Assembly: GCA_002104905.1 (NCBI GenBank)
Contig: MCFE01000156.1
Span: forward strand, 1-64,000
DNA: 64,000 nt
Reading direction: 5' to 3'
Source of the DNA: Basidiobolus meristosporus CBS 931.73
Lineage: Eukaryota > Fungi > Basidiobolomycota
The first letter of the stretch is position 1, and each line of letters opens with the position of its first letter. The notes under the pieces are model-generated. The model searched no databases, had not been told where the DNA came from, and saw only the letters and a program-made list of their open reading frames with translations. Shown in pieces: positions 5,097 to 32,191 of this stretch. The position numbers and the translations under genes were made by a program.

Positions 5097-5299
5097 TGCA
5101 CAACATTGATCCAAAAAAAAGGTCAAAAAATGGATTTTCTCCAACACAATGGGTGAAACACAGGGGCTGCTTTGCATGAAGATGAAGAGCTATGTTTCAC
5201 ACTCTGTGGCCAAGTTTAGGCTCACATGGCCTCCCTGGCACACTATGGCATCATTTGGCACTCATGGCTCAATGTGGCACTATCCAACGGAACAAGTCT
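5097..5299 (+). mobile_element. Terminal fragment of the AGACTT foldback DNA element
   Basis: Near-identical to the outer arm at about 48180-48385; ends CAAGTCT followed by ATT of Copia RNase H sequence. Confidence 0.85.
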
Positions 5300-5821: not shown

Positions 5822-5954
5822 TCCCTCCCCCCTAACATTGGATTAACTTGCCTTCTTCAGATACTTGTCATAAGTAAATAGAGATTTTACTGCTTGGTGA
5901 CTTTTCTCCCCCCCAAACCCTAACTTAATGTTATATTGAATCTGAAAGTATGCT

Positions 5955-6555
5955 TATACTTCTACTTGGTTTTGGCATTATGAGCATGTAGAAAATGCTA
6001 AGAAAGATCACAAAAGCATGTGTGCAAGGTTTGGGACTGTTTGGACAACTTTGAGAGTTTTTGTGTTCTGGTCACTAATGTTTTGGTGAGAATATTCCAA
6101 GTAAATCCCAACAAGGATATTTGTTAGGATTCTCTAAGATTTGTAAGTAATAATCTAAGTGACCAAGTTAGGTGAATATTTAGATGAAATTACAAGGCTT
6201 TACAACACATAGTACATCACTTTAGAGTTTTCTAGCCATATTCCTTTTTGGGATTTGCTTGGAATGTTTCACCAAATTTTATGCACCCAGGACATTGCTG
6301 TAAAAATTTGTATTTCCACCTATATATTCACCTAACTTAGTCACTTAGATCATCACCTTCAAATCCTAGAGAATACTGACCAAATTCCTTGTCGGGATTT
6401 ACTTAGAATATTTACCCAGAACATGAAAATTTGATAAGTTGTCCAAACAGCCCCAAACTTTGCACACATGTTCTTGGGACCTTCCATAGCCTATTCTACG
6501 TGTTTGTAATGCCAAGATCAGGTAAAAGTATAAATACTACTTTTACATTCAGTAA
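5955..6555. repeat. Truncated Copia LTR fragments (reverse about 5955-6207; forward about 6296-6555)
   Basis: Direct similarity to LTRs 6556-6904 and 10892-11223. Confidence 0.85.
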
Positions 6556-6904
6556 TGTTGTAAAATTCGTAATTTCCACCTAAATATTAACCTAACTTAG
6601 TTACTTAGATCATTACCCTCAAATCCTAGAGAATACTGACCAAATTCCTTGTCGGGATTTACTTAGAATATTTTCACCAAAATGCCAGTTACCCAGAACA
6701 TGAAAATTCTCAAAGTTGTCCAAACAGCCCCAAACTTTGCACACATGTTCTTGGGACCTTCCTTAACCTATTCTACGTGTTTGTAATGCCAAGACCAGGT
6801 AAAAGTATAAATACCACTTTTACATTCAATAAATCATTAAGTGAAAACCAAATAATCTACTTGTTCTCCCAATCACTTCCAATATCTCCAAGACTCTTAC
6901 AACA

Positions 6905-6916
6905 GGTTATGAGCCC
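6905..6916 (+). promoter_or_regulatory. Primer-binding site GGTTATGAGCCC (copia/Ty5 type, half-tRNA iMet priming)
   Basis: Immediately after the 5' LTR; also at 39364-39375 and, reversed, next to 48736; resembles the Drosophila copia / yeast Ty5 PBS. Confidence 0.8.
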
Positions 6917-9900
6917 CAAGCTGTCACTCTCTGCAATGTCTACTACTGCTATTACTGGAATTTTTCCCTCTGCTGAAAAGTTGGATGGATCTAACTACCA
7001 AGTGTGGAAGGTGAAGATGAAGATGCTGCTGCAAGAAAGAGGCCTTTGGGATATTGTCATGGGAGAAGAATGCCCTCCTAAAAACGTGGGAGAGGAAGCC
7101 TTAAAGTACCAGAAGAAAGAACAAAGTGCCTTTAACTGCATTTGCCTTAATGTCAAGGACAAATTGCTAATTCAATGCTCAAGAGCAAAAACGGCAAAGA
7201 ATGCCTGGAAGGCATTAGAAGACACCTACCAGTCATGTTCAGCTGCCAAGAAAATGTATCTGAGAAGAAAATTCTTTACTACAAAGATGCTGCCAGGAGA
7301 AGAAATGAAAAATCTAATTAACAGAATTACCCTGCTGGTAGATGAGATGGAATCTGTGGGTGTACCAACTACTGATGAGGATGTGATAGTTACCATCCTG
7401 AATAGCCTGACAGACAAGTTTCAGGGCCTTGTATCAGCCCTAGAGTCCAGAACTGAAGATTTGACCTTAAATTACGTATATGGAAGGCTCCTGGATGAAG
7501 AATTAAGAGAATCAAGCGCCAATAAGAAGGAAGAAGAAAATGCTTTAATAAGCAATGATAACCAACAAAGGAGGTACCCAAGACCCTACAAAGGCAACAG
7601 CAACCTATTTTGCAACTACTGCAAAAGGAAAGGACACACATCAGACCGGTGTTTCAAAAAGAGAGATTATCAGCAAAAGAAGCCTGAATATGGAAATGCT
7701 GCAACAACTGAAGATAGACTATTCATATCTGCAATAAATATGACCACAAACAAGGATTCTCAGACATGGTATATTGACTCTGGAGCTTCTCAACACTTTA
7801 CACACCAAAAAGAACTTTTTACCTAATATCAAGAAATTCCAATTAAGAAGGTTTTCATGGGTGACGATAGAACACTTGATGCAGTGGGAGAAGGAACTAT
7901 CCAAGTAAACCTTAGAAGCAGTGAAGGAAGCCATACACTGACCTTTAAAGAAGTACTCTATGTACCAGAAATAGCCAAGAACCTACTCTCTGTAAGCAAG
8001 GCCACAGCAGAAGGACTCAGTTTCAGTTTTGACAATTCTGGATGCAGGATCACTGATCAAAATGGTGCTCATATTGCTTTGGGCATCAGAGATCAGAATC
8101 TATACAAGCTGACTTATATTCCATCATATTTGGAAGCCAATATAAGTAACTTAAATGAAGAAACACCAATGCTTTGGCACAGGAGATTTGGACACATCAA
8201 TTTTGATTATTTGAGCAAAATGATCAAAGATCAGCTAATTTCTGGAGTGAAAATTGATCCCCCAACTAATTTGGAGCACTGTGAAGCCTGCATATATGGG
8301 AAACAAGCCAGACAACTGTTCAAGAGCTCTGGGTTAATCAAAACTAAGAAAAAATTAGATCTAATTCACTCAGATCTGTGTGGACCTATGCAAAATTTAT
8401 CCTTAGGCGGGATGAAGTATTTAATCACTTTTATTGATGATTATACAAGATACACATGGGTCTACTTCATGGAGAGAAAGGAAGAAGCTCTGTCTAAGTT
8501 CAGGGAGTTTAAAGCCATGGTGGAGAGAGAAACTGGTGAAAAAATCAAGAAAATACGCTCTGACAATGGTGGAGAATATACCTCAAAACTCTTCATCCAC
8601 TTCTGCAAAATTCATGGGATAAAGCAAGAGACTACTGTACCATACTCCCCACAGCAAAATGGAGTAGCAGAACAAGCTAACAGATCAATAATTGATATGG
8701 CAAGATCTATGATCCATGATCAAAAATTATCCTATGATTTTTGGGCGAAATCAGTTGCCACTGCTGTATACCTTAAAAATAGGAGTTATAACAGAATACT
8801 TCGTGATTCTACTCCATTTGAAGCATGGTATGGATACAGACCAAGTGCAGAACATCTAAGAATATTTGGGTGCACAGCATATGCCAAAAAACTGGCCGGA
8901 AATTAGTCAAAATTTGAGCCAAAAAGTGTAAAATGCATATTTTTGGGCTACTGCAATGAGAGTAAGGCATACAGACTCTACAATACCAAAGCAAAGAAGC
9001 TGATCAAGTCCAGGGATGTGTTGTTTGATGAAAATTCAAAATTTTCACAAAAAATGACATCAGATGATGACAAAAATTTGATCTCAAGTCCACCAATTGT
9101 CAGGATTGAATCAGAGCAAAACAATGAAAATTTTTTCACTCCAGAGGACTCTACAACCGTGGTTCAGCCAGAATCAGTGCCCAGGAATATCCCAGAAGGG
9201 ATCATTCCAGTATTAAATGCCCAGAGATCCAATCGGACAAGAAATAGCCCAAATTACTATATCAATGAGGGTACAAACTTAGCCTATGCCTATTCAGTCC
9301 ATATTGATGAACCCCAGACTGTAAAAGAGGCCCTAAATAGCCCTCAGACAAAGTTTTGGAGATCTGCAATGACTAAGGAGTATCAGGCCCTGATGGAAAA
9401 TCAAACTTGGGACTTAGTCAAATTACCAATCAACCAAAAATCAATTGGATGCAGAAGGGTCTTTAAGACAAAATACAAGGCTGATGGTACAATTGAAAGA
9501 TACAAAGCAAGACTTGTAGCCAAAGGATACTCTCAAACAAAAGGACTTGACTATACTGAGACCTTTGCACTGGTAGCCAAGTTTAATTCCATCAGATTAA
9601 TATTGGCTATTGCAGCCAAATATAAGTTTTTTATTCATCAAATGGATGTAAAAACTGCATTTTTGAATGGAGAACTTGATGAGGACGTGTATATGGACCA
9701 GCCTGATGGGTTTGTTGACCAAAATAACCCCCATTTGGTCTGCAAGCTTAAAAAGTCACTATATGGTCTCAAACAATCACCAAGAGCCTGGAATTGCAAG
9801 ATAGATTCTTATTTGGAATCTTTGAGTTTCAAAAGGAGTAATGCTGACTATAGTATATACTATAAGCCAGATAGAGCAAATCCAGTTCTATTAGCTCTAT

Positions 9901-10880
9901 ATGTGGATGATCTTATTATAGCCGCCAATAACCTAGAAACATTGGAAGAGACTAAATCCAGCCTATCTAAGGAGTTCAAGATGTCCGATCTAGGAGAACT
10001 TAGTTACAACTTAGGGATTAAGTTCTCCATAGACAGAAGTACCCAGACTATTACCCTAAGCCAATCCAAGTATATTCAAGATATACTAAAGAAGTACAAA
10101 ATGGAAGACTGTAAACCGGCAGCTACCCCAATGGAGACAAACCTTAACTTGGTCAAAACTCAACCAAATCAAGAGAGCTTGGTGCCATCTGAAAGCCCTG
10201 ACTTTCCTTATCAATCTATGGTCGGCAGTCTGATGTATATCATGCTTGGAACACGTCCAGATATCTCATATTCAGTGGGAGTTGTCAGCCAACATAATCA
10301 GAGCTATGGATCTGATCATATTGCAGCAGTTAAGCGGATTTTTAGATACCTAAAAGGAACTGCTGATATCTGCTTAAGATACACTTATAAGGACTCAGAA
10401 CAAGATCTTGTGGGATACTCTGATGCAGATTGGGGACGAAATTTAGAAAACAGAAGATCCACCACAGGATACACCTTTCTTTACTGTCAAGGAGCAATTT
10501 CATGGAATTCAAGAAAGCAACCAACCGTAGCACTTTCTACCACAGAGGCAGAGTATATGGCAGCCTGTGAAGCTACAAAAGAAGCAATGTGGTTAAGAAA
10601 GCTCTTTACAGATTTAGGCCTATGTCAAAAAACGCCTATTACTTTATTTCAAGATAATCAAGGATGTATACAATTAGGTAGAAATCCAACTTTTCATGCT
10701 AGAACCAAGCACATAGATATTAGACATCATTTCATACGTGAAGCTATAGAGAATAACTTAGTTAGCTTAGTTTACTGTCCTACAGATGAAATGATTGCAG
10801 ACATATTTACCAAACCATTAGCTAGAGACAAGTTTGAATATCTTAGGTCAAAATTAGGACTAGTCAGTATGAACATTTAG
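6909..10880 (+). pseudogene. Copia gag-pol polyprotein in one frame, broken by two in-frame stops (TAA 7824-7826, TAG 8904-8906)
   Basis: CNYCKRKGHTSDRC knuckle; WYIDSGAS protease; HRRFGH/CEAC and IHSDLCGP..SDNGGEY..QQNGVAE integrase; QMDVKTAFLNG and LYVDDL RT; YSDADWG and TKHIDIRHHF RNase H; ORFs 6777, 7857 and 8943 share a frame. Confidence 0.95.
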
Positions 10881-13295: not shown

Positions 13296-14510
13296 ATGGA
13301 AAAACAAGCGAGAATAACAAAAATCGTCAACGCTCGGGCGATACGTGCTGGCCAAATAATTGTTGGTGAGGATTTCTACGTCCAAGAGGGCAAGTTTGTG
13401 AATCCCAAGAGTGTATATCTAGAGGACCCTTCCCAGCCTGTAGACGTTATCGATGCAAAGAATGCCCTCATGTCTCCTGGATATATTGATGTCCAGGTAA
13501 ATGGTGGACTTGGTATAGATTTCACGAGTGTTAGGAGCAACATCTCCCAAGGGCTTGACAAGGTCGCCAAGTTTCTTCTCAAATGCGGTTGCACTTCGTT
13601 TTGTCCTACAGTTGTCAGTTCTAACTCCGAGTTCTATACTGAAACACTAAGTCAGTATGCCCCTCGTCCAGGAAGCATTCACCACGGCGCCGAGGTTCTT
13701 GGTCTACATCTAGAAGGGCCTTTTATCTCCCCTCAAAGACTTGGTGCTCATGACAAGACCACTGTTCGCCAAGCCCCTAATGGAATAGAGGATTTTAAGC
13801 AGTGCTACAACTTGAATGCAAAGAATACGCAATACATATCGCTGATTACTGTTGCACCGGAGGTTGAAGGTGTGTTGGATACCATCCCACATCTCGTCAA
13901 AGAAAACTTTGTCGTCAGCGTGGGCCACTCCGATGCAACCAACGCCCAGGCGGAGAAGGCCATCGAGAATGGAGCCACCATGGTCACACATATGTTTAAT
14001 GCTATGCGTCCCTTCCACCACAGAGATCCTGGAATCATTGGCCTCTTAGCTGGTGAATCTAAACCGAGACCCTACTATGGGATTATATGTGATGGTGTTC
14101 ATTGCCATCCAAGTGCGGTTAAGCTCGCTCACTACTCTCATCCTAAGGGAGCGGTGCTGGTTTCGGACTGCGCCAGCGTAACTGGATTACCGCCCGGTCA
14201 ATATACCCACGGAACCAACCACATTTTAGTCGACAAAACTGAAGAGCGGGTGTTTGTGGCGGGGACCGAAACGCTAGCCGGCTCCGTCATGACCATCGAC
14301 AAGTGTGTCAAGAACTACCGCCAGTTCACTGGATGCTCCATTGTCGAAGCTATCGAGGCTGCCACTTTGCACCCCGCGCAGGTTTTGAATATTACCGCTG
14401 CAAAAGGTAGCTTAGAGGTAGGTGTAGATGCGGACTTCCTATTTTTGGATGATGAGTTGAACGTCATGCGAGTCTTTGTTGGTGGTGAGGAAGTAGATAT
14501 ACAAGCATAG
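13296..14510 (+). CDS. nagA: N-acetylglucosamine-6-phosphate deacetylase (fungal DAC1/NAG2, AMDHD2 family)
   Basis: 404-aa intronless ORF with PGYIDVQVNG, LGLHLEGPFI, GHSDA, THMFNAM, DGVHCHP, VSDC and TLAGS amidohydrolase motifs. Confidence 0.96.
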   Translation: MEKQARITKIVNARAIRAGQIIVGEDFYVQEGKFVNPKSVYLEDPSQPVDVIDAKNALMSPGYIDVQVNGGLGIDFTSVRSNISQGLDKVAKFLLKCGCTSFCPTVVSSNSEFYTETLSQYAPRPGSIHHGAEVLGLHLEGPFISPQRLGAHDKTTVRQAPNGIEDFKQCYNLNAKNTQYISLITVAPEVEGVLDTIPHLVKENFVVSVGHSDATNAQAEKAIENGATMVTHMFNAMRPFHHRDPGIIGLLAGESKPRPYYGIICDGVHCHPSAVKLAHYSHPKGAVLVSDCASVTGLPPGQYTHGTNHILVDKTEERVFVAGTETLAGSVMTIDKCVKNYRQFTGCSIVEAIEAATLHPAQVLNITAAKGSLEVGVDADFLFLDDELNVMRVFVGGEEVDIQA

Positions 14511-16935: not shown

Positions 16936-17682
16936 ATGGAGCTCAACGACTGGCTATTTACCCAAGAAGACCTGGCGCACTCCCCTACCATATGTGATGG
17001 ATTAAGCTGGGAGAAAGAGCAGCGGTTGAGACAAAAAGGAATAGACTTCATTGTCAAAATCGGGCAATCGCTGCAACTATTTCCCACCACAACATACATA
17101 GCTGGGTTATATTTTCATCGGTTCTACACGCGACAAAGCTTCCGGACGTATCATCACTATGATCTGGCTGGAGCCTGCTTGTATGTAGCAATCAAAGCAG
17201 AAGAGGATTTCAGAGAACACTGTCCGGAGGAGATAGCGAAACAAACTTGTCGATTATTTCAGGAATGTACCATGGTATCACTCAAAACAAGGGAACATCC
17301 GAAAAACGATAGTTTAGACCAAGATGTAATACGTTGGCAGGAGACAATTTATTATCACGAAGAAATCCTTTTAGAAACCCTATGTTTTGATTTACACCTA
17401 GATTTACCCTACAAATATCTCTTTGAGGCCTTGAAACGATGCGGCGCTTCACAAAAGCATACGCTCTTGGCTACTAGGATTGCGAGCGACTTCATACGTA
17501 CGCCGCTCTGCTTACTCTATTCATCCAAGGTCCTAGCCGGGGTCGCTATATCGCAAAGCTGCCAGCTGCTCCAAAATCCGTTGATCGACCAACAAACGCT
17601 GAAGCCTTGGCGAGAGGTACTTGGTCTAGAGCCAACGCTAATCAAAGAAGCCACTGAGACGTCTAATCAAGTCACCTTGTGA
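16936..17682 (+). CDS. Transcriptional cyclin (cyclin K/T, Pch1/Ctk2/Bur2-like)
   Basis: 248 aa; W.FT..DL..SPT..DG, E...R.KG..FI, A..YFHRFY, AGACLYVAIKAEE, EEILLETLCFDL..DLPY. Confidence 0.9.
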   Translation: MELNDWLFTQEDLAHSPTICDGLSWEKEQRLRQKGIDFIVKIGQSLQLFPTTTYIAGLYFHRFYTRQSFRTYHHYDLAGACLYVAIKAEEDFREHCPEEIAKQTCRLFQECTMVSLKTREHPKNDSLDQDVIRWQETIYYHEEILLETLCFDLHLDLPYKYLFEALKRCGASQKHTLLATRIASDFIRTPLCLLYSSKVLAGVAISQSCQLLQNPLIDQQTLKPWREVLGLEPTLIKEATETSNQVTL

Positions 17683-17717: not shown

Positions 17718-19099
17718 CATTTCTTTTTGAGCAGATGAAATAGTCTCCACAGGCCATAAGAATCAATCCAGACCCAACACAACTCCCACATACGAATTTT
17801 CTATGCCAGCCCCTCTGCCATAGTCATATTTTGTTGATTCCCTGCCACCACCAGCCTCTGGGATCCAGTGGCGAAGGCAAAAAATTCAATCATTTCCTGG
17901 GAATACGAATCACTCTCCCTAGCGTGTAACCTCCGTTCCTTCTTGTTGAAGTTTACACCGAGGAGCGACGTTTTTGCATGTAACATGAACGTAATTCTAC
18001 ATTTACCACGGCAAATGCATCCCTCGTTTGCAGATATTAATATATATATATGTATATATAAACGCATATGTGTACCTATACGCAATGGACTCTTTATACA
18101 ATGCATCCATGTAGTTCTGAAACGCTGCTAAGTTCTGATCAATCTCCAGATAACAAATGAGCCTCACCACATCAGCCAATCACCTGAAAATGAGCCAGTT
18201 TCTCGGACGAATGCTGGTACGATCTCAAACATCATCTAAAATCATGCAAATCAGCGCTGGCCCGTCATTGGCCGGATTAATTCCTGAGGTTGACCCGCGA
18301 GGACCAACGGTGCCCCTGAGTGATCCCGTGTTTAAGCCTACTCAATGAGAAACGAGGCCTAATTGGAGGCTTTGGAAGGCTTGCGTTTCTCTCTCGCCCT
18401 TCCACCAAGGTGTCTTGCAGCCCTTGGGTCCCATCAAACCTATGTCATTGTGTTTGACGCTGGAAGCATTAGCAGTGGTTGGTTTGGCTCTGGTGGTACA
18501 TTGAATACTGCCTAATATCGTTTTTGATATGAGGGCAATTTCTGGGGGCTAAGTGGGATTGGTGTAGCGGTGATCGATAGGCTGGCATAGCCGCTCGCTT
18601 ACCCATATCTGTTCGACTCATTACAGCCAGGCTGTGAAGTCCCATCACCCCCCCCCCCCAAATACTGCTAACTGGATCGATGAATTCATACCTACGTCAG
18701 GAAGCTTCAAGTCTAGACAAATCGCTCGATCGATCGAGCTGGATGCGGATGAAATCTCCGATGTCGAGACACAGTTACTATATACAAAATCGATCAGAAG
18801 TAATCCCCATTTTTGAGTTGACAAAGGCGAGACCCGAATCTCACTTCCCAGCAATTTGCCCCCAACCTCGCGGCCAAGAGCGACTACTACCGCGGCGAAG
18901 GGATCGATTATCACACATGATCTCGTGGGGATGATTGGGAAGCGAAAGGAACGGTGTGGATTGGTGCGAGGATGAATCATTTATTTACAATTATTTCGTA
19001 TCGATATGTCCAGAGATTAGTTTTGGCAAGTAGTAAAAGCGCTAGCAGCATTAGTGTATATTTGGTTGCCGGAGTGGATGGTATGTACAGATGATGGGT

Positions 19100-19243
19100 C
19101 TAGCATTCCTGGGCCTGCTTGAGCATAAGGTGCAGAACGATGTAGCGGTAGCGTAGGGCTAGTTCTTGGTGGTAGAGGACGCATTCATCATTGGAGGACG
19201 AGTTGTTGGGGAGGCTCTCAACAGGGCGGGTTGATTGCGACAT
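19100..19243 (-). CDS. Small protein 1 of the YHQ-RYRYI family (47 aa, MSQSTRPVES...YHQELALRYRYIVLHLMLKQAQEC)
   Basis: Motif shared with 26919-27095 and 27772-27960, with synonymous codon differences; TATATAAG on the minus strand at 19377-19384. Confidence 0.65.
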   Translation of the reverse strand: MSQSTRPVESLPNNSSSNDECVLYHQELALRYRYIVLHLMLKQAQEC

Positions 19244-19949
19244 GACTGCCAGTTGTTTGAATACTGTCGAGATATGGTAAGGTAGTGTAAGGCAAAGATG
19301 GCAAGGATGGTAACGCTTGTGTTTGTGCCACGAGTGTCTATTGTGTAGGTTGTCCACCAGTTGGCCAAGCGCCCTGCTTATATATGCCCACAAGTCTCCA
19401 TGGAATCCTTCGATTACTGAGAAATCTGGGTCGCAGATGACATCATAAAAGAAATTCCTAAGTGCATTCAGACCCGATTGGTGTAACGGAATTTTGTGTT
19501 GGCCCATCCTGAAACCCAAATCGGATCCCACTCAATCGATTTGGTCAGGGCTATACCAATTTCCCAAATCCCCTCAACTACCCAACTTTCCAGAGGCTTC
19601 AAAACATCTTAAGGTTCAATGGGATTGCCATATTGATCTAGACGAGTCAACCCAATGGATTTCATTCAATCAGCATGAGACTTGTCCTGCCACATTTAAT
19701 CAAACCCACTGCCATTCCTTAGGATGGGCCGATTTTTAGGATGCTGGATATGTATTAATAACATGCGCTTCCGCATCAGAGACATGACATCATAGCGAGG
19801 TGAATCTAGCCTAGTTAGGAGGGAGACCAGTTTGCAAACTGCCTAGACCACTGCTCGTCGTCCGGATAAGGTTAGGCTTACCACATCTGAGTATCATGCG
19901 GTTTCTAAGATTTGACGGTTTTTTCTTAATAAAGGCAAGAAGAATAGCT

Positions 19950-20450
19950 CGTCCAAGCTGGCGCATCGAGTGGGCTGACGATGATCTCGCTCACATGTTC
20001 AAATTCCACAGGAAGGGAATCATTGGAAACGATTCAAATTCCGGCCCTCGTTCCATTAGGTTCTTTTGGGCTCCAAAGGGTTGCGAGCTGAGGAGATGCC
20101 GTTTCCAAGCTTGGGATGATCTTGACGTAAAGCTGAAAAGAACCGCGACTTGATTGGGGATATGGCTGAGTTGGCTGCAGGTTGTGTGAGCACGGTCAGT
20201 CACTTGTGGAGTGGCAGGGTAACCAGAGCCCATCACTTCAACTGTGGTAATAGGCGCTCAGTACGTGTCATTCCAAACACTAGGATTCGGTCTGAGTGAT
20301 GATCCGCCCATTATTCGAATTCTTAGCTGTTGTTCTAGCGTATGCGGATCTGGACTCTTGGTGACCCGCCCAATTTTTCCGACCGTTCTATGGGACTTGC
20401 TGATTAGGAATGGTAACTCACGAAACATCGTGGTGGGCTTTGGGTCAATG
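19950..20450 (-). pseudogene. Old Ty3/Gypsy integrase-like fossil
   Basis: FGAQKNLMERGPEFES resembles the FG.P..I.SD.G.EF.S integrase core; preceded by LRPNPSVW; weak, by-eye match. Confidence 0.35.
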
Positions 20451-21700
20451 CTTTCCGTATTTGTCAAGTTGCTAAAACGTAAGATGGTTGATTGATGTGG
20501 TAATCTGTTCGTGTTTTGGTGAGCTGTGAAGACTGGATCATGATCATCCAGCATGCGATCCTTCCATGATCCTGTGGCCGGTCGATTTTACCCCGGATGA
20601 TTCTTCCATAAACCGCGATTTCTCCGAGGACGAAGGGTTGAAAATGTGCTGAATCACTCTTCGAGATTCTTGAATGGACTCCATTAGTGTCTGGCGATGA
20701 TGCAAGGGGGTCCTACCCGCTGCAATGAGGTGACATATCCGCAAGTCTGATGTGTGCAGATGAGGTGAAACGGGTGCACCTATATGGGAGCCGAGGGCCA
20801 TCAATGTGCTGTAGCATCGTTCACGACAAGACAGCAAAATGGCCAGGTATGCTCGACATGGTGTTATGCACAGTTAAAGATGCGTAGATTTGTCACATGA
20901 GGTACCCTGGATGATCCCCAAGTAATGTAGTGGGGATCTCCGGGAATCCATTTCGTAGTCCCCCATTTGCTCCGTCGACGTGCAGTATTGCTCCAGAAAA
21001 GAGATCAATCCTTTTCCCATCCCACCCTCTCCCCCTTTGCCACTCAGCTAACCCCAACTCTAACCCTATCCCATCCCCGACTCTGACCCCAAGCTAATTG
21101 TGACCACTTTGGAACGCACATGAGTACGAGCCAGTTGGCATCATCTTGCACAAATAACTGATATCATGCTGTTGCGCCATGCGAAACCGCTCGATTCGAT
21201 TCGCTACGGACTGCGAGAATCCCTGTACTGCTTAGCACACCAAAGCATATGCGACAGCCCATCCTGCAATACGAGTCCTGGTCGACTAAACAGCGGGGAC
21301 AATTCGCTTCTGCCTAATCACCAGTTCCCCTGGGGTGTGGAACCTTGCATATGGAATGATCTATGTGAAGTTTCCGATTGATGGGGAGATTCCACCCGAT
21401 TACCAAGCGATCGTATAGCAGCTGTCGCAGGATACTCCTCGGCGGAAGTTTCGTCCAGACGATCGTTGCGGTGGATAAGCATTAGAAAGGGTTCACAGTT
21501 CTGATTTGTGGAAGGGGGGTTCCAATTTATTTTCCATCATATCTCAATTTCAAAGAACAAAATTCATCGTTGGCCGAAAAAATGGTCGTCCATCCCCCCC
21601 TGAAACTCCTGGCACTTGGAGAATCCTCGGGGATTTCAATGTAAGATTGAAGCGTTATTGAAAGTGGGGGGGGGGTGGGCCTGCTTGGTTAGGGTGGTTA

Positions 21701-22990
21701 TTACTCCTTATCCGGCCAGTCGCAGATGATGCTATCGCCGTGGGCCTTGCAAATGGTTCCATCCCCACAGGATGCTTCAGTCCACTTGCCGTGGACACAC
21801 CACTGGAACTTCTGTTGATTCTTGCCGATACACTTGTAGGATCCTTCCTGGCATTTGCCGGAGTTAGTAGGGGTAGAGGCGGGGGCAGTGGAGGTATCCT
21901 TGCTCTTCGTGGTGAGTTTGGAGGAGTGTGTTTGGGATTGGCTGGTGTGGTCGGGTTTCGAGGTGGATCCACTGGCGGTGGTGGTCTTGGTGGCGGAAAC
22001 AGTGTCTTTGGTTACGGAGGTGGAAGTTACTTTGGCAGTAGTGGTGGACACATCGGTGCTGGTTTCGACGGTGGTGGACGCCTCGACAGTGGACGAGGTT
22101 TCGGTGGAGGTCACCGTTTCTGTGACGGTAAGGGTCTCGGAATCAGTGGGTTCCACGGTCTCGCTTCCAGTAACTGAAGCAGTAGGGACAACGGCAGTCT
22201 CGGTGGCGGCACCAGTACTGGTAGGGGTGGCTGATTCTGTAGGCTCTCCGGTAGGCTCTGTAGTGGCAGTCGCGGTTGAATCAGATTGGATCACGGTTTC
22301 GGTGATGGTCAAAATATCCGAGTCGGCAGGGGGGTTTGTTGCACTTGGATCTGTCGAGGTTACCGACACATATACAGTGGAGTCAGCAGCAGTGGACTCA
22401 GGTGGCACCGTCTCAGTTGCTGATGGATCTGTGGGTGAGGGATCAACAACTGGGACTGAAGGGTCGGCGGTGGGGGTCTGGGTCGCGGAGGGATCGGTGG
22501 AATCGGTGGGAGCGGAGCTAGTAGAAGTTAAAATTACAGTGGAATCAGCAGAGGAGTTATTGTCAGTAGGGGAGGGCGTTTCGGGAGGAGGTACAATTGG
22601 AGTAGCGGAAGGGTCGCTGGGGGATGCGGTTTCAGTGGCGGTAACAGATTCGGTGGCGGTGGCAGTCTCAGTGGATGTAGCAGTGTCAGAGCTGACAGTG
22701 GATACCGTCTCAGTAGATATGATAGTGTCAGTGGGAGGAGTTGCAGAGCTGGTTTCGGTGGCGGTTACAGTTACATATACCGTACTGTCCACAGTATCAG
22801 TTGGCTCATCAGTGGTAGTAGGATCATCTGGCATGGTGATAACGCTTGTATAGGTTGCATCCGCAGGCTGGCTAGATTCAGTTGGCTCATCTGGTAAGGT
22901 AACCACGCTAGTGTAAGTGACATCCTGGGAAACGGCTTGCTGGGAATAGTAGGCCAAAAGAGCCAACAGGGTAGTGAACTGCACCTTCAT
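21701..22990 (-). CDS. Secreted Ser/Thr/Pro-rich mucin-like protein with a C-terminal CBM19-like (chitin-binding) domain, 429 aa
   Basis: Signal peptide MKVQFTTLLALLAYYSQQAVS; long S/T/P tract; C-terminal CQEGSYKC...FQWCVHGKW..ASCGDGTIC...ICDWP. Confidence 0.85.
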   Translation of the reverse strand: MKVQFTTLLALLAYYSQQAVSQDVTYTSVVTLPDEPTESSQPADATYTSVITMPDDPTTTDEPTDTVDSTVYVTVTATETSSATPPTDTIISTETVSTVSSDTATSTETATATESVTATETASPSDPSATPIVPPPETPSPTDNNSSADSTVILTSTSSAPTDSTDPSATQTPTADPSVPVVDPSPTDPSATETVPPESTAADSTVYVSVTSTDPSATNPPADSDILTITETVIQSDSTATATTEPTGEPTESATPTSTGAATETAVVPTASVTGSETVEPTDSETLTVTETVTSTETSSTVEASTTVETSTDVSTTTAKVTSTSVTKDTVSATKTTTASGSTSKPDHTSQSQTHSSKLTTKSKDTSTAPASTPTNSGKCQEGSYKCIGKNQQKFQWCVHGKWTEASCGDGTICKAHGDSIICDWPDKE

Positions 22991-25022
22991 GATGATTTTT
23001 CTGAGATTGTTGAATATGTTTGTTAGACGGAATCGAGCTGTTTTATTTATATGAGAAGAAGTAACGCCAAACTCCAAGGTTTGGTGCTCACATCAGCGAC
23101 TGCTACATGACATAATGAATATTTAGAGATTCCCATATTCACTCCGCCGATAGTGTAATCTCCTAAAGAAATACCCAACACTATGATGATACTCTCTTCA
23201 CCATGATGTTAGAGGCGGGTGACTCGATGATGGCTTGGCTATTGGAATACCGCCACCTTACATCAATGCCATTATGTCAGCATGGTTGTAATTCTACAGG
23301 CCATCCAATGAGCAACCGAGCTAAAAATAGAGTAGTTGCTATGGACGGGTGCTATGCCGAGCCGAAAAGTAATAGTGAGCAGAAATCCCCAGGTATGTCA
23401 TTATGTGTGTGTAAGCACTCAGGCTATCTATACGGGAGAATTCCAGCCACCTAGCCGTAGGGAATGGGCCAGGAAAGCAGCTGTATTTCTGAAGGTCTTC
23501 AATAATCTACAATCGCTACCGCCTTCTGATGAGAATGAAATTCTGGGTACATCGTTCTCGTTTACCCATGCAGAGAACGCAGAGTGTATAGTTGGTTTCC
23601 ATTTTCGAAGACCCCTCTAAACATGGTAAAGAGCTGATGTGATAGCGCAATTAATGAATGAGACCTGGTGGGACGGTGATTACACCATGACCCAATATGG
23701 GAGTGACCATGGATATGTATGAACCAATCGGGCCGGCTTCAGATCGACCTTGGAAGAGGAGATTGGCGGAGAGGGGACGGATCACATATTAAGGAAAGTG
23801 GTAACATTATCATATATTGAAATTATATTAAAACCATCGTAACGGCAGGTGGCCACTTGATTTGCCAACGATTATCGTGGGTCTCTGGAGCATGGTAAGG
23901 AAGCAATCGTTGGTCTGCTATTCCCACATCTTGTCGATCGATGTCATCCTAGTACATTGTACCCACGCAACCAAGAAACTAGAGAAGTGCACCACCTCAC
24001 GACTTTCATTGGGCTTTCCCTATACGTAAGTCCATACAGACGACAGCATTGCAATGTCGGTGGGTTCCAAAGGGCATGCCACTCCGCATACATAGCAATA
24101 ATCACCTGTGTAATGTTTCGGATGAAAAAAATCTAGACTCTACTGTAGCTGTATTGTCACCAACTCTAGGCCATGACGCTCTCTTGTAATAAAAAGAATC
24201 GTGCATAGTCATACGGCATTTCCGAACGTCCATAAAAGTCCAAGGCCAGGAAGTCGTGCTTCTACCATACCAGCCATCCCTTTTGCTCCCTCACCCTAGA
24301 CCATACTCCATTGCGATTCAGATGGAACCCTCCTTATGATAGCATATACGGCCAGTCTGAGGCACCGCTCGATACCGGAGGAGGGCGTGCCTTCGTTCTC
24401 TAGAAATATTATGAGCATTGGATGGCCGTGGGGTTACACGCATTTTCTAGTGACAAACATGGAAGCCATCGCCAAACTGTAGCTCCAACAAGATTTATTG
24501 TTTAGCAAGAGAGGGTGGGGAACTTGTGGCAATTCCAACTGCAGCATCTACCCCATACTGCCGCTCATGTGTGCTTGGCAGGTCTATGTGGCACAATTGG
24601 AAAATTGGCTCAAGAGGGTGTTGACTGAATAAAGCCATCATGCACATGTCGCTAATTGAATATAGTCCATGCGTAGGTCTGGATGATGAATAGCCAGGAT
24701 TAACTGACACTCAACCAGCTTTGAACTTAATTCGTGTAACTCGAGGTGTAGAGTTGACGTTGAATCTGGATGATTATCTGATGGAACGTCGCGTACTCTG
24801 TTCCTCCCCAAAAAAGTTAAATTAAGCAATTTCATGCTGCACAAGAAAGCCATGACTTGGTAGTAGTTCAGGCTGATGGGTACATATACCGCTCTTGCGC
24901 GCTGATGCCTCCCTTTTATTTGATCTTTGCCATCGCTCCAGTAGGTACACTCGTTGGAGGCATCCCTGGCTCCCCTACTTTCTGTCTCGCGTGAATACCC
25001 GAGGAGGAACATCCGTTGAAAT

Positions 25023-26099
25023 ATGACGTGGAACGAAGGCGTAGTTATAGGCTATCTGAGTAACATAGCCAACGCCTTGTCGTTAGTTGGATGTACATTT
25101 GTCATTGCGAATTACCATCTTATATACCGCCGCTTTCTCATCAATGCCTCCGAGTCCATCAAGACTCACCACATCTCCCTACTGCTTCTGTCAATTAACA
25201 ATGTCTTTCTAAACGCCGGCGGACTGGTATACTCCCTGTTGAACTGGAGGGAGAAGAAATCAATCTGCCTTTTGCAAGGCCTGCATATCACTTACTTCAA
25301 TGTTTCGAGCTGGCTATGGGGGGTATGTATATGTTTTAATGTGTAAGTGGTTTGATTCGATCTCTGATAATCGGGAGGCGTCTAATCCATCGATCCGTAG
25401 TTATCTAATCCTACTTCCATCAAAGAAGTTACTGAGAATTCGCCACAACATAGCCTTCAAGTTCGCATGGTTCTCCTTTGGCATCCCAACCATATTACTG
25501 ATCACGCTGGTCGCTCAATTGGACTCCATTGGAAACGTTGGGCCATGGTAAGCAAGTCCAACCCCTTCCCCTTCTGCTCATTAGCACGAGGCTAACCAGT
25601 ACACAGGTGTTGGATTAGGCCTCAATTCATGGGACTGCGGATGGGTGCATTTTACGGCTGGCTGCTCTTCGCCTTTACCATGTGTCTGTTGTTGCTGAGC
25701 GTTATTGCGGTGCATCTCCTCAAGATAAGAAGCTCGGTTTCCTATTGTGACCGGGGGTTCCATCATCCCTATGAAAAAATGGTTGGCCGTTACGTACTGT
25801 ATGTGGGTACGTTCTTCATCTGCTGGGGCCCTGGGGTGGTGAACCGTATCCTGCAAATCTCTGATCCACCATTCTACAACTTCCCACTCATGGCCATCCA
25901 CACGTTTCTCAGTATCTCCGTGTCATTCTGGCTGAGCCTGGTGTGGGGGTTTACGACCAGTTTGCCCGAGGTCTATTGGATCATCTGGAAGTACGGCTGG
26001 AGCAACATACCCCCTGTCCAGCAGTTTGGCTCCTTTAGCTCGGCCTTCACCGGGTTGAAAAGGCTAGAAGTGCCTAGAGTACAGAACCAAGAAGGATGA
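25023..26099 (+). CDS. cAMP-receptor-like GPCR (CAR/Git3/GCR1-like 7TM); exons 25023-25342, 25401-25547, 25607-26099; 319 aa
   Basis: Introns GTAAGT..CTAAT..TAG and GTAAGC..GCTAAC..CAG; spliced CDS of 960 nt stays in frame; CLLQG....F..SSWLW, GNVGPWCWI and YV..FFICWGPG.VNR motifs; multiple hydrophobic helices. Confidence 0.88.
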
Positions 26100-26918
26100 T
26101 CCACCGATGTTCATGGTCACATGTCCGTTCGAAACTTCTTTTGGATCACAGCTAGGGTTTCGAGGATGCTGCTCTCCTCCGTCACTCTATCCACACAGCC
26201 CCGCATGGCATCAACCTGTGCTACACTGACCAAACCCAACCTTCTGCTCATGTTACAATAAAGCGCGCAACCCTGTATGATACACCACCCATTTTCTGCT
26301 TCATAGAACCCAGGAGTCTGTGCTAGCGGGGTGGTCGCAAGTGAGCAATCTGTGAGTGGACGCACGACAGGGCCTCAACATGGCGATCAAACCAATTCCC
26401 GCCCTCAGAATATTGTTCGCCCAGAGAAACATAAAAGTCTATTCGACTTTAGAGTTACGAAATCCAGCATCACCAGATGCCCTTGATGGCCGGCGGATGT
26501 CGTAGGTTACCAACCCCACTCCCCGTTCGGATGGATGATTCCTGCGATTCTGATCAGCTCCCTATTCGCTCGCCAGTCGCCAATCGCATCGAGTCTCCCG
26601 CTTTGGATTACGCCTGTTGGAACATCCTGTTCAACCAAACTACTGTATTCGCTTGCTTCCTCTCATTGACGGCTAGAGTGGATTGTTCATTGCGCTCTAT
26701 TAGCTGCCCAATGCAACCCCTAAGAAGGCTAGCGGATTCAGCGGCATTGGCGCATCTTGATGTAATGCTGAAGCCGATTCTCTAGAAAATGATATCATCG
26801 AGAATCCATGGGTCTGACAAAGAGGTCCCAGCATAGCCAATATTGTGGGATCCATGGCCGAACTCACATATAAATGATGGCAACATCTCAGTGAGCCTCC
26901 CTCATTCGATCCACGACC

Positions 26919-27095
26919 ATGCCCGAAATGATTCGCTCAAACCCTGCACAAACCACGATGAACTACGACACCAAGCCTACCCAGGCTCGACTAAGTAGCA
27001 GTAGTGTACTCAGGATGCGCTACCACCAAGCCCTTTCGGTTCGCTATCGATACATCCTGTTACAGTCGATGGTCGATCAACAACGTAGCAACTAA
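26919..27095 (+). CDS. Small protein 2 of the YHQ-RYRYI family (58 aa, ...YHQALSVRYRYILLQSMVDQQRSN); below the ORF-track cutoff
   Basis: ATG at 26919 (alternative 26928), TAA ends 27095; TATAAA at 26869-26874. Confidence 0.65.
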   Translation: MPEMIRSNPAQTTMNYDTKPTQARLSSSSVLRMRYHQALSVRYRYILLQSMVDQQRSN

Positions 27096-27771
27096 AGCTG
27101 ATCCTCTGGTATGGATCCAGACCAAACCATGTATTTGTATATGTATCTGTATCAACCTTCCGTGTAACCCAACAGATCTTCATGCTGGCGTTGATGCTTG
27201 GAAAGCGCTAGAAACCAGAATTCACAATCCATTGTAAATATCAATAAAACCCATGAAAATCCATCAATAGCTTGTTCCCGTTTGTCCATAAATGCTCAAG
27301 GGAAATCATCGCTGTTGCGCGTATGGTGGATGGCCCATCATAGGGTCAATGATTCCTCATGAATCCTGAGACACCCATGGAACAATGCTTCAACTCGCTG
27401 TGTGGCCAATGCAGTCTGCTCTAGCTCACTTACCATCAGCATCCCATGAGCGCCTAGATTAATTTAGATGGTTTTGTGGGATATGGGTTGGCCAATTCTC
27501 AAGATGCTAATGCCAAGTGTGACAAATCTCCAGATCTCGTTAGTATTGCTTCTAGATTAGGCTAGAGTGGACATTCAGGGCGATACATACGTCATGATGA
27601 GCTCGATGAAGTCAATTTATGTCATTTTACGGACCCAACGTGTAAAACGGTCTCGTCCAGTTTTGAGCATGCATGGGACAACCCGGCTTCAGTATAAATA
27701 CCAACGTCGCTCCTTACTTTCTCGCCACCGAAAATTCCTCCTCACGGCTACTACCACTCAAATCGCCACAT

Positions 27772-27960
27772 ATGTTTGAAGTCTCCAAACTTCCTCTGAT
27801 CACTTCGGTGAATCACCACGAAACTGCCGTTCCTTCTCCCTCGATGCCGATGTTGGACCATCAGAAGCAGGTGAACGCGAAGCGCCAATACCACCAAGCC
27901 ATGGTACTGAGATATCGTTACATTCTACTTCGCTTTATGCTTGAGCAGTGCTCCCAATGA
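27772..27960 (+). CDS. Small protein 3 of the YHQ-RYRYI family (62 aa, MFEVSKLP...YHQAMVLRYRYILLRFMLEQCSQ)
   Basis: Start chosen as the first ATG after TATAAATA (27693-27700); shared motif. Confidence 0.65.
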   Translation: MFEVSKLPLITSVNHHETAVPSPSMPMLDHQKQVNAKRQYHQAMVLRYRYILLRFMLEQCSQ

Positions 27961-28949
27961 AACCTTTCGAAATCCCGCTGGCCCGAAATGGATTGCTATG
28001 TAATTGTAGATTTGTTGTAAATAGCCAGTTGAACTGCCTGAGCCTGCACACCCACTTCAGAATGTAAATAAGTCGTAACAAAACAAAATCACTTCGAGGC
28101 GCGACCCTCGTTAATAAATCCCAAGTTTACCTACATTCGCTCGACCGGATCGGCACATTAGAAATCCAATCCCCACCGATCTGTTAGGACGCAACGGCCA
28201 AGATACACAGGTGTCTGAAGATCCAACCCGTCCGCCTCAATAGTTGCCTTACTTGACGTGTACTAGGCTGGATCTCGGATCCACCGATATGACTGGCTGT
28301 GAACCATCTAAAGTGGCTTACCCACTGCAACCAAATCGTGTCAGAATCCCCGGTGCTTATTCCACCATCATGAGACACAAGAGTGCCGGGAATGTGAATA
28401 TCACGGGCATCAAGATCGACGAATGAGCCCACTCTCTCTTGACTCATAGCCCACATACCCCATCGTTATGAGGATGACCTCACTACTGGGGGGTGTAACA
28501 GAAAGGATTGGATCTTGAGATGCTTGCCAATGGTCACGCCACTAAGGAATCGATGCTCCTCAGGTTACGTTACAATAAACCGCAATATCCTACTGTCCAG
28601 TCAGCTGACGTTACTCCACTGATTGTTCTGAAACCCGAAGTTTTTCTCGTTTAACCATTTAATATGATTGTCCAGAGATCGGTGACCTATCACCAACGGG
28701 TCCCTCCGCCAATCATCGCCTAACAGATAAACCTTAGGAAAATCATCAAGGGCTCACTGGACCAGCCCATAGAGGCCACCTATCTCCCCCATGGGGGCGG
28801 TGGATCTTCATCTTTGGGAATCGTCATTGTTAATTCAAATTTCCATATACTTCGCGAAGTTCTCGATTTCCAAGACACATGGTGGAAGGGGGGGGCAGCT
28901 GAATCTTCCTTTCCCTACCACCGTCCCGATCTACAGCCGATTCCCACAG

Positions 28950-30250
28950 GTACGTGGCCAGTTTGAAATTCATCTCATTCGTGTCTTGCTGTTCATGTGC
29001 TACCTACTCCAGCACGATGCTTCCAGAAAGAGTCGCTGCCCCCGGACCCTTGATACCAAATGGCTTGGTGACAATTGGGAAGTGCCACCCGTTCACCTTG
29101 ACTACCCAGCCCAAGGGGTCCCCCCCTTTCCCTTAAGGATCGATTTTCTACCCAATCGCCCCACTCCCCCATTTGGCCAAGCAAATGATCACACATAGAT
29201 AAGGTTAACATTGTGTAGCGGGGCTTGATTTGGCGAAGGGCGGGGGGTCTGAGTGATGAGGTATTCTTTAATCCTGGGCGGTTGGTGACTTGGCGGGTGA
29301 AACAAAGTCCCTGGTCACCACGTATGCGTATGTGGTGCAAAGCTGGGGGCATCGTGTAGGGTTGAAGGTCCGAGGCACCCCCCCCAGTGCAGGTATGTTT
29401 GCCTTCGCGGCAGCACGCTAGGCTCATCACGTTGCAGGAGCACTCGAACCAGCTTGCCAGTTGTTGCAAAGTCCGCTTTGACGCGGTGATTCGTTCCCAC
29501 CGCCCGCCCAGTTCCAATAGGAAGATGGTCGGGCCACCTGCTCAACCCAATGAGATGCTCACAATCGGTCACCATACACTTGCCTTCGCCATATAGCATC
29601 CGCTCAAGATGATTTGAAGAGCACCAGTTCCAAGCGCCAGATCCGGTGATTTCTCGTCCACGTTCATCGGTTGTCACATGGACCTAGCTGTCCTCGAGCC
29701 TCCTGTGCAATCCCCCGGGAACTTCCATCATCTTAGCTCATCATTGGCTCGGAAAGAGTGACCCATTCCCATTCCCATTCCCATTCGTACCCCCTGCCGT
29801 ATGGGATCCCGCTGTCGAAGGTTGAAGTTTTTTACATTTCCTGGATGGGGACTAAATCCGATTCTCTCGCAAGCCCATCGAGCCGTGCCCAGTCCCAAGA
29901 TTCTTCCCCCACCGGATATGATAGTGTGCCTGGAAGACTTGGCATATCAAGGGGACCATCGAATAGATCCTCTCGGCGACCTTCACGATGGAACTGTGGC
30001 TAGGAGGGTATCCACATCAGTACCCGTTAGTACCATCAGTCGCTTCGTCTCTCAATGACAGATTTGAAACTCTACTCGGCCGAACCAAATAGTGGTGCTC
30101 GCCATAGATTCCAAGGAGACCTTGGCCATGAAATCGGCCATGCGGTGTAACGTAGTGCGTTTCTGGTGAGTGGAAATTGGGAATTGGTTGATGGGTGATG
30201 GCCATGGGGTGTAACAACCGCTACGTGGCTGTTTCCATCGGTACACGGGA
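28950..30250 (-). pseudogene. Old Ty3/Gypsy pol fossil (RT-RNase H-integrase)
   Basis: Remnants in Gypsy order: VTPHGRF, DVDTLL, RILG, GFSPHPGNV, LYGEGKCMVTDCEHL, SRWPDHL..N..KAD, LHDAP; many stops and frameshifts. Confidence 0.5.
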
Positions 30251-32191
30251 ATCACCAGCTGGTCCCCGTGAATGTGTCGGTCTCACCAATCACCACAGGC
30301 CATCCCCAATATCTTGATCTCCAAATCTGTGTGGCATGGTGGCAGTTGCTTTCATGGGAGATAGGTAGATCATCCGATCGTAGCTTCACCGTCAGCATCA
30401 AGAGGATCTCCAAAGTCGTCCTAAACACTCCACTCGAACCCTGCTCACCCCACCCCACCCTACCAGAACCATGAACCTTTCAAGCCCACAGCTGGACCAC
30501 CTCTAGGTGACTTCGGAATATGCTGTGTCACCGCTGAGTTTCCGGCCACCAGTTACCCATACATACTCGCCTGGAAGAAAGGAAGCACAGTTTCCCTGAG
30601 AAGCCCACATCTCATTCTATCGAAGAAACCGGGCCACGAGCCAGGTCATCAACCAGTGACATTGTTGCGGTGAAGGAATCCCGGACAACATCCATCACAC
30701 CTCAGGAGGACGTAGTTGACGGGGAGTTTCCAATGATGCACCCTAACTGTCCTCGACATTTCGCAGTGTAGTCGGGTGGGTTGCGCAGAGGGAGTCTGGG
30801 AGGTCTTTGGTGACCACTCTTCCCACCTTACCTCATACTTCCAAGAGACTAATGCCGAAGCTTACTGTGTCTCCCGCCTACTGAGGTAAAGGGGCTACCG
30901 AAAACCCGAAAATTCTTGGGGAATGGCCATCTGAAAGATCGAACGACCCGGAATTGTCCCTCGCCTAAGGGTGGAGGCGTGGATGGATGGCGTGACAGTG
31001 TAGCAAAGGCGGCCCCAAAAACAAGACCCAGAAGTGGTCGGCAATCATTCGTGACCCAGGAAATCGTCCTGGCTTGTTAGACCTAGTGGTAGGCGATGGA
31101 ACTCACACCCACCCTACCCTTCATCTCCGAGGCCTATTGGAAACTCCACACCCAGCCAAAAATCCCTGGCGATAACCTCCATTTCTTTGTTACCGCCTAG
31201 TGGTTCGTTTTGCTTTTGTCTTGGTGTACATACCTCATCTACGCTCCATTCTCAACCGTCAGGGATCACCATCTGCTCCTTACTTCTTGGTGGACCTATC
31301 AAGTCCCCGGATTCCCGTTGCACCCATGGCATCAACAGAGATATCCCCACGAAGGCCACTGCCCGATAAACTCGAGCGCCTTGGGCGTAATACGGAAGCA
31401 CGAAGAGCCCGGAAAGAACGACCGTGGAGTGCTAAATGTTTCTACATACTTGGGAACATGTGGGCCCCAGGAGTCGACGACCTTTCAAGCCAGAGGCACC
31501 TACGGATCATTTTTCCCGGGGCAACCAAGGCGACTCTATCAAACACCATGACAAGAACCGGCTCGGAGTCCGAACTTTCTCCTCGCTTTAGGCAGTTTCC
31601 TCTTTCGCCAAGGCTACGCGAGGGTGTCTGCCGTCATAGCCTCGGCTGGGCAATGAAGTGGAGCCGTGTGGCTTGGCTCCCATGCTCCTACCGAAAATGG
31701 ATGCCCACCATTTACGCCCCTACTGCTGCTGGCCATCATTGGTGGGATTCCATGATGATTCCCAATGGTTGTGATGAGTTGGCCTAGGCATCTAAATCAC
31801 TCCACGGTTGTGATTAGAACAGCAAAGGTCACCCTTTGGTGGGAAGATTGCACAGGTGGGGATTTAAAGTTCGTTTCCATGGTCCTAAGAAGTTATGGAT
31901 CTCACGATAGCAGCATGCCAATGCAAACCTGCTTCAACATCGCCGCAAACAAGGTGAATGAATGACCCGGAAAGTCCGGTGGCTACGAGATGGTGGGATA
32001 TTTCAATACCACCGGTGTAGCTATGGGAGATGTGAGAAAAGACAGAGGACAAACCGAAAGCAACTTGGGCTTCACTAAGGTGGGAGATTGTGGTCCTGTT
32101 TTTTGAGAATTCCCGTGTCAATTATTTTCCAATAGCACTTGGAAAGTGGCCTAGCAGCATCAGCGCCACTTATTCTCAGGGTCCCAGTATT

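Follow-up and report, generated by a model that had tools for sequence, protein, structure and literature searches.

The first 64,000 nucleotides of contig MCFE01000156.1 of Basidiobolus meristosporus CBS 931.73 (assembly GCA_002104905.1; hereafter the window) carry three small open reading frames (smORF1, smORF2 and smORF3) whose predicted products share a conserved C-terminal motif, and the evidence that these constitute a family of microprotein genes is examined here. The window is rich in transposable elements (TEs), with a GC content of ~0.38, and includes a GC-richer gene island (0.44-0.53) at 14-32 kb. The genes called between record positions 14701 and 29990 encode a cyclin, a mucin-like protein and a G protein-coupled receptor (GPCR) and there are no others, hence all three smORFs are unannotated in B. 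meristosporus; a word-indexed protein search also returned no small protein encoded by the window. A first-pass annotation of the sequence had anticipated that annotators would probably miss one of the copies, and the family was indeed missed: none of the three sites is called in the JGI B. meristosporus annotation, and just one of the three is annotated in Basidiobolus ranarum.

The translations of the three ORFs, of 47, 58 and 62 amino acids (aa), match those given at the first pass, as does their common C-terminal motif. A six-frame regular-expression search of the 64 kb for YHQ....RYRY returned matches at 19142-19174 (-), 27021-27053 (+) and 27889-27921 (+) and at no other position. When the motif was back-translated to a degenerate DNA pattern (Y-H-Q-x4-R-Y-R-Y-h-x-L-x2-M), the window again yielded these three sites, whereas 100 shuffles that preserved dinucleotide composition yielded none (0.00). 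A hidden Markov model (HMM) of the motif detected no copy in the remaining, TE-rich part of the window, and no further copies in six-frame pieces of the paralogous N-acetylglucosamine-6-phosphate deacetylase (NagA) and cyclin loci examined from B. meristosporus (L004-L006) and B. ranarum (L003, L007 and L008). When the B. ranarum orthologs described below are included, the invariant core over six genes (three paralogs in each of two species) is Y-H-Q-x4-R-Y-R-Y-x2-L-x2-M, with one motif in each of the six proteins. The C-termini of these are QQRSN, QQRNS, QCSQ (twice), AQEC and SSSDS; the final Q of the motif as originally described is not invariant, since one B. ranarum ortholog ends ...NIMAHSSSDS. 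Outside of the motif the paralogs show no DNA similarity in their flanks, again as first reported, the motif region alone being alignable by blastn, at 68-76% identity and with barely significant scores.

The sole relative present in the databases is P0001, a 58-aa 'hypothetical protein K7432_011448' from B. ranarum, which is the ortholog of smORF1 and whose gene has a Dicty_CAR gene directly upstream on its contig (L001), as for smORF1 in the window. The smORF2 ortholog is located ~0.7 kb 3' of the P0001 gene, at L001:6058-6246(+), where an unannotated ORF encodes 62 aa that end ...YHQALALRYRYMLLRFMLDQCSQ, with the same final ...QCSQ as smORF2. The B. ranarum contig that bears the orthologous deacetylase and cyclin genes (L002), which was fetched via the window cyclin, encodes the smORF3 ortholog at L002:11533-11703(-); this ORF, also unannotated, specifies 56 aa that contain ...YHQALCVRYRYLLLNIM... 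and lies ~1.3 kb beyond the cyclin gene on the minus strand, as in the window. Because syntenic orthologs are present on the same strand for all three smORFs, all three genes were in place and in their present orientation before the species split. The two species are collinear throughout this region, and the smORF flanks are single-copy. A transposon-encoded protein was considered and rejected, the copia-type elements lying outside the island and the flanks being unique and collinear with B. ranarum.

Comparison of the orthologous pairs revealed a pattern of divergence characteristic of protein-coding sequence. For the smORF1 pair, the proportion of synonymous differences (pS) is 0.73 over the whole ORF and 0.68 over the 17-codon motif, while the proportion of nonsynonymous differences (pN) is 0.05 in the motif and 0.37 in the N-terminal tail. 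The respective values are 0.83, 0.98, 0.11 and 0.31 for the smORF2 pair, and 0.78, 0.93, 0.24 and 0.63 for the smORF3 pair; the neighbouring cyclin has a pS of 0.75 and a pN of 0.11 between the species. Synonymous sites are saturated, then, at a motif pS of 0.68-0.98, whereas motif pN is just 0.05-0.24. When the six motif sequences are compared in all 15 pairings, the differences at codon positions 1, 2 and 3 stand at 82:30:162, and each invariant residue is encoded by two to five synonymous codons. The use of different codons at conserved residues, which had been remarked upon in the three paralogs, therefore extends to the six genes (Arg by AGA/CGC/CGT and by AGG/CGA/CGC/CGT, Leu by five codons). 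Between paralogs, the motifs share 55-67% nucleotide identity with 10-13 of 17 residues matching. Members of the smORF1 and smORF2 pairs are equal in length (58/58 and 62/62 aa), with ATG and stop codons aligned and no indels inside the ORF, while indels are present in the flanks immediately 5' and 3'. The orthologous DNA of smORF3 was undetected by blastn, with the peptide motif nevertheless kept. Saturated pS, low motif pN, the third-position excess and the kept frames therefore indicate a translated and constrained sequence, and together with the syntenic orthologs they uphold the original proposal of selection on the protein as opposed to DNA duplication.

These data also bear on the possibility that the conserved 50-60 nucleotides (nt) constitute a DNA or RNA element in which the ORFs are incidental. 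The ORFs are certainly very short, and are uncalled in the B. meristosporus annotation, which would be consistent with such an element. However, the concentration of differences at third positions, the use of up to five synonymous codons at invariant residues, the low nucleotide identity between paralog motifs relative to the number of matching residues, and the complete lack of frame-breaking indels in the six genes despite saturated synonymous divergence all run counter to it, as does the lack of an Rfam match, and the explanation is strongly disfavoured to the point of being scarcely credible. On the basis of these sequence comparisons, the conserved motif is neither a DNA or RNA element nor the product of a recent duplication, and smORF1-3 are very probably real protein-coding microprotein genes under purifying selection.

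The regions surrounding the ORFs (Table 1) were examined for gene signals. A TATA[AT]A[AT] box is present 50-141 nt upstream of the ATG in all six genes, and AATAAA occurs 115-150 nt 3' of the stop codon in each of the three window genes. Conserved blocks 5' of smORF1 include a CCAAT block, TCTTGATGTAATGCT, GAAAATGATATCA, TGACAAAGAGGTCCCAGCA and TATAAA at 26869-26875, and the conserved blocks upstream of smORF1 and smORF2 (79% identity) exceed the neighbouring GPCR coding sequence (69%) in conservation. By virtue of the TATA boxes, the conserved upstream blocks and the downstream AATAAA, the gene signals fit standalone transcription units, and the strong conservation 5' of smORF1 and smORF2 is indicative of tight control at the level of transcription. 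The block 5' of smORF2 (27487-27654), which is non-coding and contains GTCATGATGAGCT and ATTTATGTCAT, has an identity above that of any neighbouring coding sequence. It matches no Rfam family, a search over 13-33 kb having returned one chance-level match and nothing else, and an ATG-started reading inside it is stopped early in B. ranarum; the block is probably a regulatory region, with a small RNA being the alternative. The smORF3 promoter is unalignable between the species beyond the TATA region, and the promoters of the three paralogs have no 8-mer in common. All six promoters contain an ATGT[CA]AT-type site, although it was picked post hoc and represents a lead only, and a 12-mer common to the smORF1 and smORF2 upstream regions, GGCTAGAGTGGA, is at chance level (E = 0.13).

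Table 1. Positions of the smORFs, associated gene signals and neighbouring called genes in the window.
Feature	Position	Strand	Remarks
smORF1	26919..27095	(+)	58-aa coding sequence including stop; motif YHQALSVRYRYILLQSMVDQ at 27021-27080
smORF2	27772..27960	(+)	62-aa coding sequence including stop; motif YHQAMVLRYRYILLRFMLEQ at 27889-27948
smORF3	19100..19243	(-)	47-aa coding sequence including stop; motif YHQELALRYRYIVLHLMLKQ at 19115-19174
smORF1 promoter and 5' leader	26696..26918	(+)	Blocks conserved in B. ranarum (blastn, alignment)
AATAAA of smORF1	27243..27248	(+)	~150 nt past stop; consensus match only
smORF2 upstream block	27487..27654	(+)	79% identical to B. ranarum (blastn and alignment)
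smORF2 TATA box (TATAAAT)	27693..27699	(+)	79 nt upstream of ATG; kept in B. ranarum
AATAAA of smORF2	28113..28118	(+)	~150 nt past stop; consensus match only
smORF3 TATA box (TATATAA)	19378..19384	(-)	~141 nt upstream of ATG; consensus match, putative function
TGATGTCAT site		(-)	~200 nt upstream of smORF3 ATG
AATAAA polyadenylation-like signal of smORF3	18980..18985	(-)	~115 nt past stop; consensus match only
N-acetylglucosamine-6-phosphate deacetylase (NagA)	13296-14510		Called gene of the island
Cyclin-like gene	16936..17682	(+)	Called; synteny anchor, 1.4 kb from smORF3 in the window
Secreted Ser/Thr-rich mucin-like protein	21701-22990	(-)	Called gene, 429 aa
Dicty_CAR-type (cAMP-receptor-like) GPCR	25023..26099	(+)	Called, 319 aa; synteny anchor

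The same signals, together with the ortholog comparison, are pertinent to the idea that the motif is the C-terminal exon of longer spliced proteins, the short ORFs being artefacts of a reading that is blind to introns. Introns are frequent in fungal genes, and the stop-to-stop frames of smORF2 (95 aa) and smORF3 (143 aa) do extend upstream of the ATG in the window. These extensions are not conserved, however, B. ranarum having stops 13 codons upstream of the smORF2 and smORF3 starts, whereas the position of the ATG and the TATA box are. Additionally, the extended smORF2 frame would have its start 5' of the TATA box of the gene itself, the motif turned up in no longer protein when 1.84 billion proteins, whatever their length, were searched with a profile, and the smORF1 ortholog is called in B. 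ranarum as a single-exon 58-aa gene. A spliced origin for the motif is considered highly improbable.

Predicted features of the proteins were examined by running AlphaFold2 on two of the paralogs, smORF2 and smORF3, with a six-sequence alignment. The smORF2 protein is predicted to be disordered at residues 1-25 and helical from 26 to 61, with a mean pLDDT of 97 in both the 41-50 and 51-60 blocks, and the smORF3 protein to be disordered at residues 1-14 with a helix at 15-46 (pLDDT 94-98). The N-terminal tails of the family, at 23-39 residues, are fast-evolving and rich in S/T/P/N/Q (38-57%), and since the longest hydrophobic run within them is 2-3 residues, the proteins have neither a signal peptide nor a membrane anchor. 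The motif had initially been characterised as a basic/aromatic amphipathic helix, of which the helix is supported by the AlphaFold2 prediction and the amphipathic character is not; the binding to a protein or nucleic acid proposed along with it is putative. The Eisenberg moment of the C-terminal helix at 100 degrees is 0.04-0.14, and the invariant Y, H, Q, R, Y, R, Y, L and M residues are placed on every side of a helical wheel (counted by hand). Such all-round conservation suggests that the segment is fully enclosed, whether by a partner or in an oligomer, and the low moment and spread of invariant residues fit an enclosed helix as opposed to one lying on a surface.

The explanation proposed on these grounds is that the three smORFs would be standalone transcription units, each with its own tightly regulated TATA promoter, encoding proteins in which the C-terminal helix with its invariant core would serve as a docking module that becomes fully enclosed. 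Enclosure could be provided by a partner protein common to all three paralogs, or by a homo- or hetero-oligomeric bundle, with the Tyr, Arg, His and Gln side chains of the helix making specific contacts. The disordered tail that precedes the docking segment may be disposable, may have a regulatory part or may simply act as a spacer, and each paralog would be regulated in its own way through its variable tail and its separate promoter. Separately transcribed Basidiobolus microprotein genes and an enclosed docking helix jointly represent the best explanation, one that we regard as probable, if only just. The docking mechanism taken on its own, comprising a disordered tail, separate TATA promoters and a C-terminal segment that becomes enclosed through self-association or by a partner common to the paralogs, is more tentative, being evenly balanced at best.

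Several points weigh against this explanation. Transcription and translation of the smORFs, and with them a partner and a cellular role, are features that we infer, the basis for the first two being sequence evolution, and the comparison between species is one of two species only, B. meristosporus and B. ranarum. The smORF3 pair is far less conserved than the others, with the highest motif pN (0.24), a C-terminal end that differs and a promoter that resists alignment. The hydrophobic moment of the C-terminal segment peaks at 150-160 degrees (0.37-0.50), a strand-like periodicity that stems from the R-Y-R-Y-I alternation, and the bound state of the motif may perhaps be strand-like rather than helical. 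Finally, AlphaFold2 often defaults to helix for short peptides with shallow alignments.

The Dicty_CAR-type GPCR gene lies directly 5' of smORF1 and smORF2 in both species, which places the two smORFs 0.8-1.7 kb downstream of a seven-transmembrane (7TM) receptor gene. The mating loci of basidiomycetes carry lipopeptide (a-factor-like) pheromone precursors beside receptor genes, where the precursor genes are tiny, multi-copy and often unannotated. The smORFs recall such precursors by analogy, in being tiny multi-copy genes beside a 7TM receptor gene, with products that combine a variable N-terminus with a conserved C-terminal peptide and lack a signal peptide. By this analogy they might be precursors of exported pheromone- or hormone-like peptides that are sensed by the adjacent receptor, with the 20-mer constituting the mature ligand and the N-terminus a discarded pro-region. 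Yet all six proteins lack a CAAX box at the C-terminus, with no Cys at position -4, and besides the lack of a signal peptide there is no dibasic processing site conserved family-wide. Moreover, smORF3 adjoins no receptor, and the receptor itself differs from those of pheromone loci in being of the Dicty_CAR type, the STE3 model being absent from its Pfam matches. Since the whole region is collinear between the species, adjacency to the receptor carries little weight, and a role for the smORFs as ligand precursors appears very unlikely. It would be a long shot that the 20-mer is a new kind of fungal peptide signal, one that leaves the cell with neither a signal peptide nor CAAX lipidation and is perceived by the cAMP-receptor-like GPCR encoded next to it. 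If true, an early-diverging fungus would have a genetically linked peptide-receptor pair unlike the Ste2/Ste3 pheromone systems.

A further reading of the small genes and their Tyr-rich motif is that they encode precursors of ribosomally synthesised and post-translationally modified peptides (RiPPs), the conserved Tyr-rich core of which would be cross-linked or otherwise tailored by enzymes. One report describes Basidiobolus as unusually rich in secondary-metabolite genes (PMC7466969), which would accord with a RiPP pathway. Nonetheless, the hallmarks of the dikaritin/ustiloxin type, namely a signal peptide and a repeated core flanked by Kex2 (KR) sites, are lacking, and no UstYa/DUF3328 or other tailoring-enzyme domain was found in any ORF of the 13-32 kb island. 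The three copies, furthermore, are located at two separate places beside housekeeping-type genes, and a RiPP precursor function is judged extremely improbable. Each of the rival explanations, then, fails at least one direct test.

Searches for relatives of the family beyond Basidiobolus were largely negative. Pfam-A hmmscan of the three proteins identified no families at E up to 10, PDB sequences yielded nothing in a profile search over the same range, and an ESM Atlas feature search gave no usable match. Exhaustive searching with the HMMER profile, which covered 1.84 billion representative proteins irrespective of length, returned P0001 and two TPR-repeat proteins and nothing else, the TPR matches (E = 4e-4 and 6e-4) being summed over 5-6 weak repeat matches. 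At the DNA level, the degenerate motif had no matches in JGI metagenome contigs, 185,579 prokaryote genomes or IMG/VR viral contigs, and a literature search for the motif found no mention of it, just purine/pyrimidine 'RYRY' DNA motifs. At the first pass the motif had been recognised from no named family, and no described family or TE protein matches it among Pfam, the 1.84 billion proteins or PDB sequences. As judged from these searches, the family is previously undescribed, mostly unannotated and seen so far only in Basidiobolus.

Other features of the window and of the B. ranarum contigs merit description. The AT-rich flanks of the island (window 3437-10880 and 33-50 kb) hold copies of copia-type long terminal repeat retrotransposons (gag, integrase and RVT_2, broken into several ORFs), including gag, integrase and reverse transcriptase ORFs at 6.8-10.9 kb and more elements at 33-50 kb. 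Related copia elements end both B. ranarum contigs (L001:8372-9014 and L002:12399-12846), and their 66-85% identity indicates a TE family common to the two species that is active or recent in each. The mucin-like protein has a signal peptide, extreme Ser/Thr/Pro richness, a Cys-rich C-terminal module and no Pfam match; the 3' part of its gene is conserved in B. ranarum (L001:228-745), and the gene accounts for a strong GC skew (0.215) at 22-24 kb. NagA is multi-copy in Basidiobolus, with at least five copies in B. meristosporus and three in B. ranarum (L005, L006, L007 and L008 among the loci). The copies often adjoin glucosamine-6-phosphate isomerase genes, and are sometimes in tandem, in what looks like an expanded gene set for N-acetylglucosamine/chitin catabolism. 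There are two 248-aa co-orthologs of the window cyclin in B. ranarum (79% and 75% identity), on separate contigs (L002 and L003), which suggests that these regions are duplicated or homeologous; there may be further smORF orthologs, forming a second set, near the L003 cyclin, the contig stopping 70 bp after that gene. Lastly, positions 28000-32000 of the window form the GC-richest part of the island (0.51-0.53) and contain several ORFs of 80-195 aa with no Pfam match; as far as record position 29990 no gene is called here, and the sequence bears no likeness to that 3' of smORF2 in B. ranarum.

Basidiobolus is associated with the gut of amphibians and reptiles and occasionally acts as a pathogen of humans; to our knowledge, hardly any of the biology specific to the genus has been explained in molecular terms. 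Taxonomically restricted microproteins, which are systematically missed, as here, form a broad known class of small proteins to which the smORF family belongs. The support for coding that can be drawn from sequence is in this instance unusually good, there being three paralogs, each compared between two species, with synonymous sites saturated and the motif all but invariant, and the discovery of small ORFs in early-diverging fungi has in this family a clean test case. The motif also offers a defined handle of 17-20 residues with which to seek a binding partner. The practical reach of the family will stay limited as long as it has no assigned function.

Several known motifs and families were considered as possible counterparts. 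The closest resemblance at the sequence level is to helix B of TPR_10/TPR_12 (AE.LY.QAL.LR.R.LG..HPDT), where the stretch xYHQALxLRYRY[ILM] of the family aligns with LYRQALELRRRVL. An hhalign comparison of alignment A6 with 13 repeats of P0002 gave a 42% probability over 19 columns (LYRQALELRRRVL versus QYHQALxLRYRYI), a weak score that falls short of showing homology. The smORFs differ from TPR proteins in having one helix as opposed to a helix-turn-helix repeat of 34-42 residues that is usually in tandem, and in lacking the LG..HP loop. Membership of the TPR repeats was rejected on the basis of the single AlphaFold2 helix and the lack of a TPR Pfam model match at E = 10. At most, the smORF motif is possibly a mimic of a TPR helix, by resemblance and not by membership. 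LYR-motif proteins (Complex1_LYR, PF05347), which have three helices, ~80-120 aa and an N-terminal L-Y-R/K motif, were rejected given the single helix and the lack of a Pfam match at E up to 10, the smORF tripeptides being L-Y-H or R-Y-R and not L-Y-R. The PIP box, IQ motif, LIR/AIM and PTS1 were excluded by eye against their consensus patterns. Fungal amyloid signalling motifs (HET-s/sigma/PP), which are shared with the N-terminus of a partner NLR whose gene is usually adjacent, were rejected since no larger protein with the motif was found among the 1.84 billion and no NACHT or NB-ARC domain is present in neighbouring ORFs.

Likenesses of architecture can be drawn more readily. The plant LITTLE ZIPPER and animal Id proteins are microProteins, each of which imitates a single interaction helix found in larger proteins, and resemble the smORF products in being small single-helix proteins, thought in their case to occupy the interface of a partner. 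They are derived from a larger family, however, whereas no larger protein with the smORF motif was found among the 1.84 billion representatives. Sml1, Hug1 and Dif1 of yeast and Spd1 of fission yeast are small disordered regulators with one conserved binding helix that inhibit ribonucleotide reductase. They share no sequence similarity with the Basidiobolus family, the motif of which is conserved on all helix faces. Nevertheless, these regulators, at 50-100 aa, resemble the smORF products in having no signal peptide, in being mostly disordered and in possessing one short conserved motif, which in the yeast proteins docks on a partner; they are likewise lineage-restricted, with paralogs, tight regulation and a tendency to be missed by annotators.

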